Assembly (NCBI RefSeq): GCF_963853765.1
Contig: NC_088857.1
Coordinates: 9,734,001 to 9,798,000, forward strand
Direction: 5' to 3'
DNA length: 64,000 nt
Source: Magallana gigas
Lineage: Eukaryota
In this document: positions 18,910 through 24,300 of the stretch, in pieces
Numbering within the stretch: the stretch's first letter is position 1
Layout: each line of letters opens with the position of its first letter
Notes under the pieces: generated by a model
Told to the model about the DNA's origin: nothing
Databases searched by the model: none
Seen by the model: only the letters and a program-made list of their open reading frames with translations
Made by a program: the position numbers and the translations under genes

Positions 18910-20100
18910 ATGTTAAAGTATTCGGTTACAAGTGATGAAGGCTCGTTCTCTCCAAACCCTGCTTACCACGAACACACAGAAACTCATTTAATGAAGGACA
19001 CAATTGACGTCAACATCAATCCAAGGTCGCGTGCAAAAATGGTGATGAAGAAACGTGCAAAGCAGGTTCAGAGAAGAGGAGGAGACTTTTCATTTTTCCC
19101 GCCAATTTCTAGGACTCCCAACAATCAGCGTAAGGAGGTCATTACACCGTATGTTAACCATATAGACGCAGAATCGCCGTATATTAATTCATTGGGAATA
19201 TCACGTGTTCATGACGTCACGACACCGTATGTTTTACATAGCCAATATTCAAAACACGACGTCTCGTCACCCATGCCCCAGAAGGAGCATACGAGGGTCT
19301 CAAATCTCTCTCGTAATAACGCAGGAACCCCCCAGAATCAACCCCAGCATAATGTAGTGGAAATTACTAGAATTAGAAAAGACCAATCGTTTTCTCACGA
19401 AAGTATTAACAAAATTGGTGCTTCCTCTCCATTCATAGAAAGACGGTCTCGGTTAGATCATCGTCGAAAGTTAACGAAAGAGAATGCAAATCAACATACG
19501 TCTCGAAACCACGTGCATGATACAGACAAAAACGCAAAGTTGCAGGTTCAGAGTAATCAAATGGGACTAGTGCAAAGGACCGAGCGCCACAAGTCTTTCC
19601 ACGACTACAGCCGAGCCAGAAACGAGGAACAGTTCTCTATCCGGAAGAAAATAGAGCAGTTCCGGAAATGGCACGAGGAACAGTATAAAGACAAGCTGAA
19701 GAGATTGAAAGAAGAGGTAGACAATCAGTACGAAGTCGAGAACATAAAGGCTCAAACTTCCAGGGTCGGTAGTCACACACCGCAAGGCAATGTATCGGTG
19801 GAAAAGAGAGAACGGCCAGAAAAGAAAAGAAAACCCGAACCACAAAAATCGTCTTCCAGTGAACAAACCCCGGTTCTGAATGGAGAGAATTTACCAAGCT
19901 CTGTGGACGAAAAAGCGAGTTCCGAACGGACTTGGCACACGTGGCGTGACGTCAACGATTCCTACGCGTACTCTGACGTGAAGCAGTACATAGAGGAAAA
20001 CGAACTGATGACGAAAGAGAAGGAGGAGTGGATAAAGAAATGGGTCATCGATGTTGACAAAGCGATGAAACAAGAGACAGACGGTACCTCTCAAGTGTGA
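18910..20100 (+). CDS. Uncharacterised 396-aa protein in a single coding exon; hydrophilic and probably disordered, with a coiled coil and a W-rich helical C-terminus
   Basis: 1191-nt open frame in AT-rich DNA with higher GC. Upstream splice signals: CAG|18680-18730|GTAAGT and GCAG|18831. No recognised domain; the true start may be ATG 18991. Confidence 0.75.
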   Translation: MLKYSVTSDEGSFSPNPAYHEHTETHLMKDTIDVNINPRSRAKMVMKKRAKQVQRRGGDFSFFPPISRTPNNQRKEVITPYVNHIDAESPYINSLGISRVHDVTTPYVLHSQYSKHDVSSPMPQKEHTRVSNLSRNNAGTPQNQPQHNVVEITRIRKDQSFSHESINKIGASSPFIERRSRLDHRRKLTKENANQHTSRNHVHDTDKNAKLQVQSNQMGLVQRTERHKSFHDYSRARNEEQFSIRKKIEQFRKWHEEQYKDKLKRLKEEVDNQYEVENIKAQTSRVGSHTPQGNVSVEKRERPEKKRKPEPQKSSSSEQTPVLNGENLPSSVDEKASSERTWHTWRDVNDSYAYSDVKQYIEENELMTKEKEEWIKKWVIDVDKAMKQETDGTSQV

Positions 20101-21322
20101 TCCACATATAAGCTTACTGTGATAAAAACTTATTGTGATATATTCATGTATTCAGTTTGATTGATCTCTGTAGAGATTCCGTCATCAGTCCAAAACTACA
20201 GTATTATCTCAGATATTTTGGAAAGTGGTGCAAAAGGACACCCGGATTCCTGTATTTTTCTTCCTTACCTAAAAGTTTTGCCCACAACGAAAATATATGA
20301 GGAGATTGTAAAATATAACCGTTTACTTGAATAAGCAATGTACAATGTAAGCAAAGAAAGCGATATGTAATTTATTAGTAAATACATATTTAATGAAATG
20401 TTGATGCACATTCTTACCTCGCGCTGAATTTCTTAATATAAATATGAACTAATTATATGAAAACTTTATTTTATTGAGTTTGTTTTAAAAAAAATATATT
20501 GTTAAATAAATTATTGTTTGCACAAGGCGTTTGTAATAATTGAATTTGACATAACGATTGAAGAACATGTACACGTTTTTTTGCTTCTAATTTTGCATCT
20601 TTAACTCAACAATGGAGGATTTAACCAGTGCACAACACGAGCCAATATCAACAAAGAAGTTTTCTTAAGTTTGCAAATCATTTTGTATATGACTTTTTGT
20701 ATAAATGCATGCATGTATACGTGTTTAGCGACCAAGTACAAAGATTTTGGATGCAAGGGCGAATATTGCATTTTTAAGGGGTTGGAAAGTACTTTGCAAA
20801 AGCAGATTTCGTGTTATTTAAGTCGAAATTAAACGTACCAGCGAATATTTTTTGAAATCACACCTAGTATACATGAAGTTATAAATCATTTGTTTGAGTG
20901 TTCAAAGGACGAATATACAGTATCCTCCTGACATCGACAACACTTTTCATCAATTTTTCATATAAAATTGTGTATACCGTGTTTGTGATAATGTAATCCC
21001 TTCGTCTGTGAAACTCGAGGAATCCACTAATCATAACTATTCACCAAATATGAAGATTCCTCAATCAAACCATATACATAGAAAGCGTGAATAAAGAGGT
21101 TTTTTCAAGGAGACTTTTTAAAATAACTTGTATCCCTTTACCGCATTTTACGATATCCTTTGTTTTATTCATTAATGGAATACACATGTATATGCAAACG
21201 CTTGCAGAGGTTCTCGGTTCAAATGATCAAATGAATAAAGCACAGACTTTAGATGATGTATTTGTTTGATGTGCTCTTTGTAAATGAATAATATGCAGAC
21301 GAGGTACACCCTCCGGAAATTT

Positions 21323-24300
21323 TTATATGTTAATGACATAATAACTATCGGGATTCTGTCGCAGAGTGGAGCCGCCCCTGTGAAGCGTGAAGATCTCTGG
21401 ACCATGTCCGCATAGCTGTGCCGCAATCTAATAAACAGATAAACAACAGTTAGCGATATACACACCTTAGAAATAATCAAAAGTCAAAGAAAATGTATAA
21501 AACTAATATATTTATTGCTTTCTGTTACTGGTAATGGAGTTAAACTATAGTGGAATATAGATAAGGCTGGGTTCGATTGACCTATTCTAGATTAACGTAC
21601 GTAGCATCTTACATTTAATTATTACAATCTATCTTAAGTTATTAATGCAATGCATTTTCTTTGATTATTAAATATATATATAAATATCACAGGATTCGTA
21701 CGATGTTCATTCAACAGTATAAAAAATTTTTATTTCTCTTTTGAAACACCCACTCTAGCTTGTCAGATTTCAATACACAGCTTAAAAGAAAATGTTTACG
21801 GGGATTTTGCATTGTAACATAAATAAAACTAAAAGTACCCGGATGGGACGAGATCGATGAAAAATTGTGCGAGGTATTCCAAATGACATCAAAATCTAAC
21901 ATTTCCCATTATAAATATCCATAAGAAATCTGTTTTTGTAACTACAAATATTTGAGTGAAAAACGAAAATGTGTAGCTGAAGATATTCTGGATATTTTTC
22001 CTATTCATCAATTTCAATTGCACTTCTTTTACAGGTACATGTATGTGCATTTTATATGATAATTAAAAATCGTCCAAATGCATAAACATTTTTGGACAGA
22101 CTTTATGGGTACACAAAACAAAAAGAGACCTGTTAATGGCAATGTAACCATGGACCAACTTGCTGATATTTTGTTGATTATAGGACCTCGTTTTGCAAGC
22201 CTAACCTCTGAATAAAGGTTAAATAGTTTACAGTGCCTAGATTAACGAATCTGTGAGTGTGGTTCTTACAAGTATTTGATTTAACAAGTCTTCATACGTT
22301 GTTCACTGTTCATTTCAAAGTTCATTCATTGTAAATAGTTCGCAGTGAATGTCTCTGTTTGGGAAGTCCCAATAAGAATATACAACACTGACCTTGAACC
22401 CGTCATCCGTGCACTCCACGAAGATTCCCGACAGGGAGGAAGAGTCCAGATTGTACTGACCAAACTCAAACGTGGCGATCGGTGTGTACGCAGGAATCCT
22501 GGCGCAGTTTTCCAACACCTAAAAATTAAAAGGAAGTGTGTCAAGTTATTAGTCCTCGCTTTTCCTGACAGGCCTCAGTATCATCACGTTCGGTCAGTAA
22601 GCACCATTGCACAGTGCAGACTTCAGTATGATCCAGACCTACATTTTTGTCAACCCCCATCCCCCCTTCCAACAAATACAGGATGTACATGTAAACGCCT
22701 GGATTATGTCGACTAGTAAATTCAAAAGTACACTCAAACGGAAGTTCTCGTCTGTTTACCTTGGGTCCGGCGGTCCATGCCGAGGGTGCCGGAGCCTTAC
22801 AGGTCTGCATGACGACCGCCTCGGGTGCACTGTGGGTCCCGTCCGTGCAAAGTCCGGCATTGTCGTTAAGAACTTGGTTTCCATTTGCAAGAACCATCAC
22901 AAAGGCCAGAGGATCACATGTCTCTATAAGAAGAAACATATAAGATTAACTACCTTATCAAATATACTAAATGCATGGTAATTAAACAGAAGTATGCTAG
23001 TATGCTAATTTGTTGTTTTTATTTCATCACGCTGGTATCGATATGAAATAAAATAATTTGGTTATACACATGTATGCACGATCTACAAAATATTATTTGG
23101 ACGTTGTCCATTCCGTTTTCTCAAATCAATGCCCAAAAAATTGATACTACAAATTTATTTTACCAGAACAGCACAAAACCAATATTTTAACAATATAACA
23201 ACGATTATGGAACTAGTATATTAAATATCTTATAGTTTGGTAATATTGTAGTATGGTTTATCAAAAGTACTGATATTTACTGAGATTCAGAGGAGGCAAT
23301 GTGCTTCCTGGCATATTAGTGGTTGCTGGTGGCATGGTTGTGGTGGCGGGTGGCATGGTGGTAGTGGCAGGTGGCATAGTGGTGGTAACTGGTTTCTTTG
23401 TGGTGATCGGCTGTGTGGTTACCTGGACGGTCGTCGTCGGTTTCTCTGTTGGTTTCTCCGTAGGTTTGTGCGTTGTTGTCACGTGAGAATGTTGTTGGAT
23501 ATGAAGAAGACCTACAGTACAAATCACCTGATTATAAAATTGATTGGTTCGTTGAGCTGTGAGATATAGCAGCTCATGTTGCTTTGTGACATTACATACC
23601 TTCACAAAACGTTTGTAACTTATTAAGACAGCCAGGTTCAGTGTTGTGTGTAATAAGGTCTCGAAGCCTATTCTCTAAAAATAACAAAAAAAATTCTTAT
23701 ATTCCAAAAGGAAGAAAGAAGAAGAATATTATATCGAACATGCTAATACTCTATAACTGCAAAAATTATGAAACATTCGGACAAGTCACCAGTGTTTCCA
23801 TAAACATTTTAAACTTATGAAATCCGCTCTTATTCCAAATAAGTTCCAAGGAGTTATTCCGGATATTGACGTCCGAAATGCTCCAGTATAATTATGTATT
23901 TGCAAATTTTCCGGATCGGAATATCCCAAAGTGCATCGAACACTAGAGACCTGTATGTCACTCTATATGTGATATGTATGGGACCGGAGTACCTTGTGCA
24001 CAGTGTTTTTAAATAGAGACCAATAAACCTAAATATGTGCATGTACAAAGAAATACCTCACAATATGCACAAATGATAGACGGCGCGTCTTTTAACCATA
24101 ATGAATCACAATGATACCACAATGAACTGATGATATTAATTGAATACATTCATTATATATTTGGTATAACTACCTATACGTGTTTTATACACAATTTACA
24201 GGTAACTGCAATGTTTGACATTGTGGTTAAAAGACGCGCCCATGATACAGACCGGAATGTACATGTAATCCAATGAATACCGGTATATCTGTAAACAAAA

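Follow-up and report, generated by a model that had tools for sequence, protein, structure and literature searches.

What use can an oyster have for a domain of bacterial amidase origin in which every catalytic residue has been replaced? Domesticated amidase effectors are a textbook example of gene transfer from bacteria to animals, and to our knowledge they have so far been known as enzymes. In our study, the question is raised by a window of 64,000 nucleotides from the genome of Magallana gigas (contig NC_088857.1 of assembly GCF_963853765.1, forward-strand positions 9,734,001 to 9,798,000), whose minus strand carries a gene of 11 exons (20928–28725) for a protein of 326 amino acids. The C-terminal domain of this protein is, judged by its sequence and by its modelled structure, a structural and evolutionary relative of the bacterial effector Tae2 and of its animal descendant Dae2, an immune enzyme of arachnids, but not a functional member of that group. 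The explanation that we regard as best, and as rather probable when taken as a whole, is that this secreted protein bears a dead Tae2-derived domain on a stalk, where it would serve as a non-enzymatic binding module with a cell-wall component as its likely ligand. All positions given here refer to the whole 64,000-nucleotide window, and domain residues are numbered within the C-terminal domain (up to 134).

The assignment of the domain was based on profile comparisons and on a structural model. The oyster protein matches the NCBIfam model NF033857 (BPSL0067_fam) with 25.9 bits (E 9.2e-6), the curated cut-off being 27 bits; three oyster orthologues score 28.3 and 29.3, over the cut-off, and 24.7, under it, with a best E-value of 8.4e-7. 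A search of 1.8 billion representative proteins gave a family set of 195 relatives, from which 64 full-length domains were aligned, and 37 of these 64 match NF033857 at E <= 0.01. When the 64-sequence profile was compared with the PDB, there was one meaningful match, Tae2 of Salmonella Typhi (6WIN, E 0.015), and the hhalign comparison of the dead family with eight active Tae2/Dae2 relatives gave 99.9 % with an E-value of 2.9e-34 over 113 columns. A profile built from active relatives retrieves more than 1,000 proteins, including those of bacteria, ticks and bdelloid rotifers, secreted proteins of spider and scorpion, and one annelid protein; among them are tick entries named "domesticated amidase effector 2-like" and bacterial entries named "BPSL0067 family protein". 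Single-sequence searches were of little use: phmmer against the PDB returned chance matches only, and Pfam searches with single exons or with the transcript protein of 122 amino acids gave nothing useful.

The AlphaFold2 model built on the 64-sequence alignment has a predicted local distance difference test score (pLDDT) of 96 and a predicted template modelling score of 0.90, and in it the domain takes the papain-like alpha+beta fold of Tae2; the model made from the four orthologues alone had a pLDDT of 37 and was unusable. Foldseek found 6WIN as the sole significant PDB match of the model (E 2.1e-5), and VIA-align placed the same structure first, with a Z-score of 15.9 and a root-mean-square deviation of 2.0 Å over 119 of 134 residues, followed by CHAP endolysins (Z 8.7), NlpC/P60 enzymes (Z 6–7) and RipD (Z 6.3). 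The likeness to CHAP and NlpC/P60 proteins exists at the level of fold only (Z 6–8.7; neighbours by ESM features at 0.86–0.89), and Pfam gave no match to CHAP (PF05257) or NlpC-P60 (PF00877), either for P0009, the transcript-derived protein that carries the domain, at up to E 10 or for the full-length protein P0010 at E 0.01. There was likewise no Pfam match of the domain to Tae4/Dae4 (PF14113).

The residues on which catalysis depends in this fold are known from earlier work: in Tae2 they are Cys23 and His73, with 6WIN as the structure (Hayes et al., preprint 10.1101/2020.04.10.036376). In the alignment of our profile with the PDB, Cys23 falls on site 37 of the domain and His73 on site 87; the MAFFT alignment with active relatives and the hhalign alignment give the same two columns, and in the hhalign alignment Ala103 is moreover matched to the Asp of "DQW", a motif of the enzymes. 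The three columns of the Cys-His-Asp triad are therefore occupied in the oyster protein by Pro37, Leu87 and Ala103, so that the domain is predicted to be unable to work as a cysteine amidase. The replacement of Cys by Pro and of His by Leu had been proposed from the sequence of this locus, and these alignments bear it out. Both segments in question lie where the original prediction had put them: "SAPEAVVMQTC" is in exon 9 (22760–22923, minus strand, domain residues 4–58, with C6, C29, C45 and Pro37 followed by Glu38; the Pro37 codon is 22825–22823), and "SLSGIF" is in exon 10 (22393–22518, minus strand, residues 59–100, with C63, C94, the core "IPAYTPIATF" and Leu87, whose codon is 22434–22432), position 22393 being the true 3' end of that exon. 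The range of 22393–22830 given for the domain does hold both sites, but the domain runs on into exon 11, whose coding part (21323–21427, minus strand, residues 101–134) contains the third triad site, Ala103 (codon 21421–21419), together with the conserved Gln104, C106 and the stop codon. In the structural model, a helix (38–45) begins directly after site 37 and a strand (88–95) directly after site 87, a predicted placement that is as expected of a papain-like active site.

The loss of the triad is a property of a whole family. Cys, His and Asp are kept in all 128 active relatives compared, from bacteria, ticks, a spider, a scorpion, rotifers and an annelid, and in none of the 127 six-cysteine mollusc domains. 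Across this dead family, site 37 may be Ser, Pro, Asn, Asp, Ala, His or Thr, and site 87 may be Leu, Gln, Val, Ile, Met or occasionally His, while the six cysteines C6, C29, C45, C63, C94 and C106 are invariant or almost so. It had been supposed that the loss concerned this single gene; both sites are indeed lost in it, but the loss is old and common to the whole mollusc family. In two proteins of Mactra antiquata (P0138 and P0146) the base site keeps its His, in "GHSAIF", but the nucleophile has been replaced by Asp and the triad Asp by Val, a state that looks intermediate from the sequence and lies inside the dead clade.

It is important to consider whether the domain might still be a hydrolase that employs other residues, namely the Ser found at site 37 in orthologues, or His34 or His108 acting with Glu38. 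Ser at site 37 is present in the orthologues and in many paralogues, Glu38 in 73 % of the family, and all four oyster orthologues carry both His34 and His108. However, this species has Pro at site 37, most family members have Leu, Gln, Val, Ile or Met at site 87, and neither histidine is conserved in the family (His34 in 70 of 163, His108 in 25 of 163); His108 also aligns with the non-catalytic "GH" that follows "DQWC" in the active enzymes. Because all six cysteines occupy invariant scaffold positions, no free thiol is expected either, and we consider hydrolysis by such residues very improbable. The segment "LCGHGPEIF" in the last exon was also considered as a true "GH" base motif and was rejected, as it aligns with the same non-catalytic "GH" of the active enzymes.

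An inactive domain could also be the relic of a once active amidase gene that now decays by neutral evolution, and the disappearance of all three catalytic residues is what such a relic would present. Our study compared codon alignments with the orthologues of Ostrea edulis and Saccostrea cucullata, in which synonymous sites are near saturation, so that the ratios of nonsynonymous to synonymous substitution rates (dN/dS) are rough. Between oyster genera, dN is 0.075–0.127 in the dead amidase domain, 0.24–0.31 in the N-terminal region and 0.28–0.40 in the stalk; dN/dS is 0.051 and 0.054 in the domain and 0.12 and 0.31 in the stalk, and in the N-terminal region dS is saturated and yields no ratio. 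No other part of the protein is as constrained as the domain: its 50-residue core has two variable positions among four oyster genera, and RNA reads reveal two polymorphisms in the exons of the domain, both synonymous, one in the third codon position of Pro37 and one in that of Ile90. With a dN/dS of about 0.05 and the highest conservation in the protein, the domain is kept by selection and is not decaying; the dN/dS check suggested by the original prediction thus returned purifying selection where neutral decay would have counted against it.

The transcript evidence points in the same direction. The open reading frame of exon 9, used as a query, led to a protein of 122 amino acids (P0009) in public transcript assemblies, which joins three exons of the window; blastn places the four contigs that code for it on eleven separate blocks. 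Every one of the ten introns is GT-AG, and the coding sequence of 981 nucleotides obtained by joining the exons translates without a stop to 326 amino acids. Nine splice junctions, from exon 2 to exon 11, are present in contigs of three RNA runs, and four of the nine are confirmed by raw polyA reads from a fourth run; in this run the first mate is always plus-strand, consistent with a minus-strand mRNA. The coding part of exon 11 is a conserved exon found by tblastx against paralogues, and its junction with exon 10 (21427|22393) is in the RNA. The runs that contain the gene come from several studies and are labelled as oyster metagenome, and the proteins most similar to it are those of oysters. 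The kept scaffold, the six other cysteines and the intact frame that had been read from the sequence are all upheld, since the cysteines are near-invariant and the spliced mRNA is found both in contigs and in raw reads. A correctly spliced mRNA with an intact frame in several runs from several studies, a dead state common to bivalves and a gastropod, and the constraint described above refute the relic explanation, to which we give practically no probability.

The remainder of the gene, all of it on the minus strand, encodes the parts that precede the domain. The start codon is at 28725–28723 and the stop codon, TAA, at 21325–21323, with a 3' untranslated region that extends to at least 20928. 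Exon 1 (28692–28725) contains the start codon and, by inspection of the sequence, most of a putative signal peptide that is completed in exon 2; this signal-peptide-like start of the protein, called by inspection and composition, is MAVRFFVLTLTALSIDA, and the full-length protein P0010 begins with MAVRFF. The region of exons 2 to 7 (23600–26259; exon 2 at 26259–26230, exon 3 at 26117–26067, exon 4 at 25884–25837, exon 5 at 25570–25520, exon 6 at 24845–24780 and exon 7 at 23674–23600), defined by RNA junctions and the exon model, encodes a His-rich N-terminal region of about 115 amino acids, for which Pfam and ESM Atlas searches found no relative. Exon 8 (23281–23511) translates into a Thr/Pro-rich, mucin-like stalk, a repetitive stretch ahead of the folded C-terminal domain with 23 Thr and 14 Pro per 66 residues and a weak match to the Pfam Mucin family (E 1.5); within it, Tandem Repeats Finder identified a repeat with a period of 21 nucleotides (seven amino acids, TTTMPPA) in 4 copies at 23309–23393. 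From this composition the stalk may be expected to be O-glycosylated. The layout of the protein is thus a putative signal peptide, the His-rich N-terminal region, the Thr/Pro stalk and, from exons 9 to 11, the six-cysteine C-terminal domain of 131 amino acids.

The pattern of conservation around the former active site bears on what the domain may do. Several positions are kept in common with the enzymes (W53, G56, V59, the IATF motif, G98 and Q104), and four residues are newly conserved in the dead family, namely Glu38 (Glu in 73 %), Tyr69, Pro71 and Gly89, two of which adjoin the lost nucleophile and the lost base. From these patterns of conservation, the former pocket looks as if it had been remodelled and not abandoned. 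There is also evidence that weighs against a simple retention of the substrate groove: besides the triad, V38, T50, A88, A89, W105 and R113 are conserved in at least 91 % of the enzymes and are unconstrained in the dead family, and with six neighbours of the active site relaxed, the groove of the enzymes may have been lost and the ligand may be something other than peptidoglycan.

This observation is the starting point of the main rival explanation, in which the domain would be a general extracellular interaction module that binds a host molecule, either a glycan of mucus or matrix or a protein partner, and would contribute to the assembly of mucus or matrix and not to immunity. The freedom of T50, W105 and R113 to vary in the dead family (they are 91–99 % conserved in enzymes) agrees with it, as does the combination of the domain with EGF, ShK and mucin stalks, which are typical of matrix and mucus proteins; one family member is annotated as "integumentary mucin C.1-like". 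On the other hand, the groove-flanking residues W53, G56, V59, IATF and Q104 are retained, and a scallop protein in which the domain is fused to DUF4874 and DUF4832 has the look of a substrate-targeting role. We regard the binding of a host molecule as possible but on the unlikely side.

The preferred explanation, recognition of a bacterial cell-wall component, can be set out as follows. Tae2, an amidase effector of bacterial type VI secretion, would have given rise to an animal domain of the same lineage as arachnid Dae2. The papain-like/CHAP-type fold has been kept and the whole Cys-His-Asp triad lost; this loss would have occurred once, at the base of the mollusc family. The family has since grown, with about 15 copies in this genome, and in other mollusc proteins its domain has been joined to stalks and to ShK, EGF and glycosidase-like domains. 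At present the domain would act without catalysis, as a binding module displayed on a stalk, in which the remodelled pocket with Glu38, Tyr69, Pro71 and Gly89 would be the putative binding site; its most likely ligand would be a component of the bacterial cell wall, and the protein may be a mucus-borne factor of recognition or agglutination. The original prediction had read the protein as a mucosal receptor, agglutinin or decoy made from a bacterial weapon. Much of what that reading relied on has been found, namely a homologue of the Tae2 weapon that is dead, selected and expressed on a secreted protein with a Thr/Pro stalk, but simple retention of the groove does not agree with the relaxation of its six neighbours.

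The architecture of other mollusc proteins bears on this explanation. The dead domain is always C-terminal in them, joined to ShK, EGF or DUF4874 plus DUF4832 glycosidase-like domains, as would be expected of a portable binding module. In the protein of Argopecten irradians XP_069111722 (P0141 cluster), DUF4874 and DUF4832 are followed by the C-terminal dead Dae2 domain, a layout that by analogy resembles an enzyme with a targeting module. The named members of the dead family that were looked up are all from molluscs, including many bivalves and the gastropod Haliotis, and their database names are "uncharacterized" or generic. The genome studied here, of 564 Mb, contains about 15 copies, all of which lack both Cys and His: three, including this gene, stand alone on contig 5, contig 3 has another two, and the others form tandem clusters on contigs 2 and 5; there is no paralogue within the window. 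A genome-wide search for active paralogues, another check proposed at the outset, found no intact Tae2-like gene when the bacterial family model and an active six-cysteine query were used and both sites were read in every paralogue.

This genome also carries a second amidase-effector family, of the dae4 type, as indicated by two intronless open reading frames on contig 8 (5989192–5989575 and 6009354–6009686) that score over the cut-off of the Pfam family Tae4 (PF14113), with 41.9 and 33.2 bits; they are not among the paralogue matches of the dead domain. They keep the segment "GHIALW" or "GHVALW", and the stretch that we tentatively take to be the Tae4 nucleophile region reads "SALRMSF" or "SALRLSY" in them and has no Cys; phmmer gave no PDB match. 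Two further observations concern the surroundings of the gene within the window. The stretch 21650–22060, inside intron 10, is 60–77 % similar when translated, on both strands, to a stretch near a paralogue on contig 3, and is probably a dispersed repeat or a transposon fragment; low-depth RNA coverage on both strands is seen at 21800–22170. Just past the 3' end of the gene, on the opposite (plus) strand, an open reading frame of 396 amino acids, rich in Lys, Glu, Ser and His, occupies 18910–20100.

When and how the domain reached the molluscs can be approached through the six scaffold cysteines, of which bacteria have none, arachnid Dae2 has four and the annelid protein has all six; five active sequences derived from metagenomes or transcripts also have all six, as the dead family does. 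We built two trees from a short alignment of 116–126 columns, both unrooted, the second with ten active-site columns removed. Support is given as ultrafast bootstrap and as the Shimodaira-Hasegawa-like approximate likelihood ratio test (SH-aLRT); the bootstrap of tree 1 did not converge (correlation 0.943, 0.99 being wanted), so its values are rough. In tree 1 the dead domains form one side of a branch with bootstrap/SH-aLRT values of 100/98, the dead domains together with the six-cysteine active forms are supported by 99/88, and all cysteine-scaffold forms are separated from bacteria, rotifers and protists with 99/91; in tree 2 the SH-aLRT values of these three branches are 86, 80 and 92, respectively. 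A quick first tree gave the same groups. The nearest neighbours of the dead clade are the six-cysteine active forms, including an annelid one. The best-supported reading of these sequences, although it is not proven, is that catalysis was lost once, in an early mollusc, within one animal lineage shared with arachnid Dae2.

Further observations concern the distribution of active forms. Proteins of the Dae2 type from ticks, spiders and scorpions (P0183, P0185, P0189, P0191, P0209, P0211 and P0152) have four cysteine positions in common with the annelid and mollusc forms and fall together with them, apart from bacteria, which points to a lineage that is arachnid-wide and possibly older in animals, whereas Hayes et al. 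(preprint 10.1101/2020.04.10.036376) describe an acquisition by ticks some 40 million years ago. Within the bacterial-type sequences, the copies of bdelloid rotifers, such as Rotaria magnacalcarata P0167, make up a separate and well-supported clade, each with no more than two of the six scaffold cysteines. One rotifer protein carries two active domains in tandem. From their sequences, the rotifer copies look like an independent acquisition. A broader proposal is that one Tae2-derived lineage, marked by its cysteines and present in arachnids, annelids and molluscs, was converted in molluscs, before the split of bivalves and gastropods, from a lytic enzyme into a non-catalytic recognition module, which was then expanded and shuffled; this we put forward tentatively, as more doubtful than probable.

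The comparison with known systems defines what is particular to the oyster protein. With Tae2 (6WIN, Salmonella Typhi; NF033857) it has in common the fold, the motifs W..G..V and IATF, and the Q of "DQW". Unlike it, Tae2 has Cys23, His73 and Asp and no disulfide scaffold, and as a small protein of the cytoplasm it is delivered into competing bacteria, whereas Pro, Leu and Ala stand at the triad sites of the oyster domain, which has six conserved cysteines and is the C-terminal module of a secreted protein of 326 amino acids. Tick Dae2 is an animal descendant of Tae2 that has four of the six scaffold cysteines in common (positions 29, 45, 63 and 94) and that groups with the forms from molluscs and the annelid, apart from those of bacteria and rotifers. 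However, Dae2 has an intact triad and is lytic, its Cys43 mutant being inactive (Hayes et al., preprint 10.1101/2020.04.10.036376). It is also secreted as a small protein that stands alone, whereas the oyster protein appears from its sequence to be non-catalytic and has an N-terminal region and a stalk. The closest parallels in kind are non-catalytic peptidoglycan recognition proteins (PGRPs) and RipD of Mycobacterium tuberculosis (NlpC/P60; PDB 4JXB and 4LJ1), in which a catalytically dead cell-wall hydrolase fold has been kept as a binding module. The PGRPs differ in having the unrelated amidase_2 fold, and RipD differs in being bacterial and a distant relative in fold that is not derived from Tae2; that the analogy extends to function is plausible, and we infer it from these parallels.

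In the searchable literature we found work on tick Dae2 only, and no description of a mollusc Dae2-like or dead Dae2 family; a mention in the supplementary data of the founding paper (Chou et al. 2015) is possible. The mollusc dead family thus appears to be a previously undescribed pseudo-enzyme branch of the domesticated amidase effectors. A dead family that is large, old, conserved and expressed would show a second fate for transferred weapons, their conversion to a binding module. The cysteine scaffold that the mollusc forms share with those of arachnids and the annelid also has implications for the timing and number of transfers of Tae2 genes into animals, a question that denser sampling can test. 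For the mucosal immunity of oysters, the family would provide a new candidate family of recognition proteins, and, if a single lineage did become a recognition module, it would constitute a previously unrecognised invertebrate family of pattern-recognition proteins or agglutinins, of bacterial-weapon origin and parallel to the non-catalytic PGRPs.

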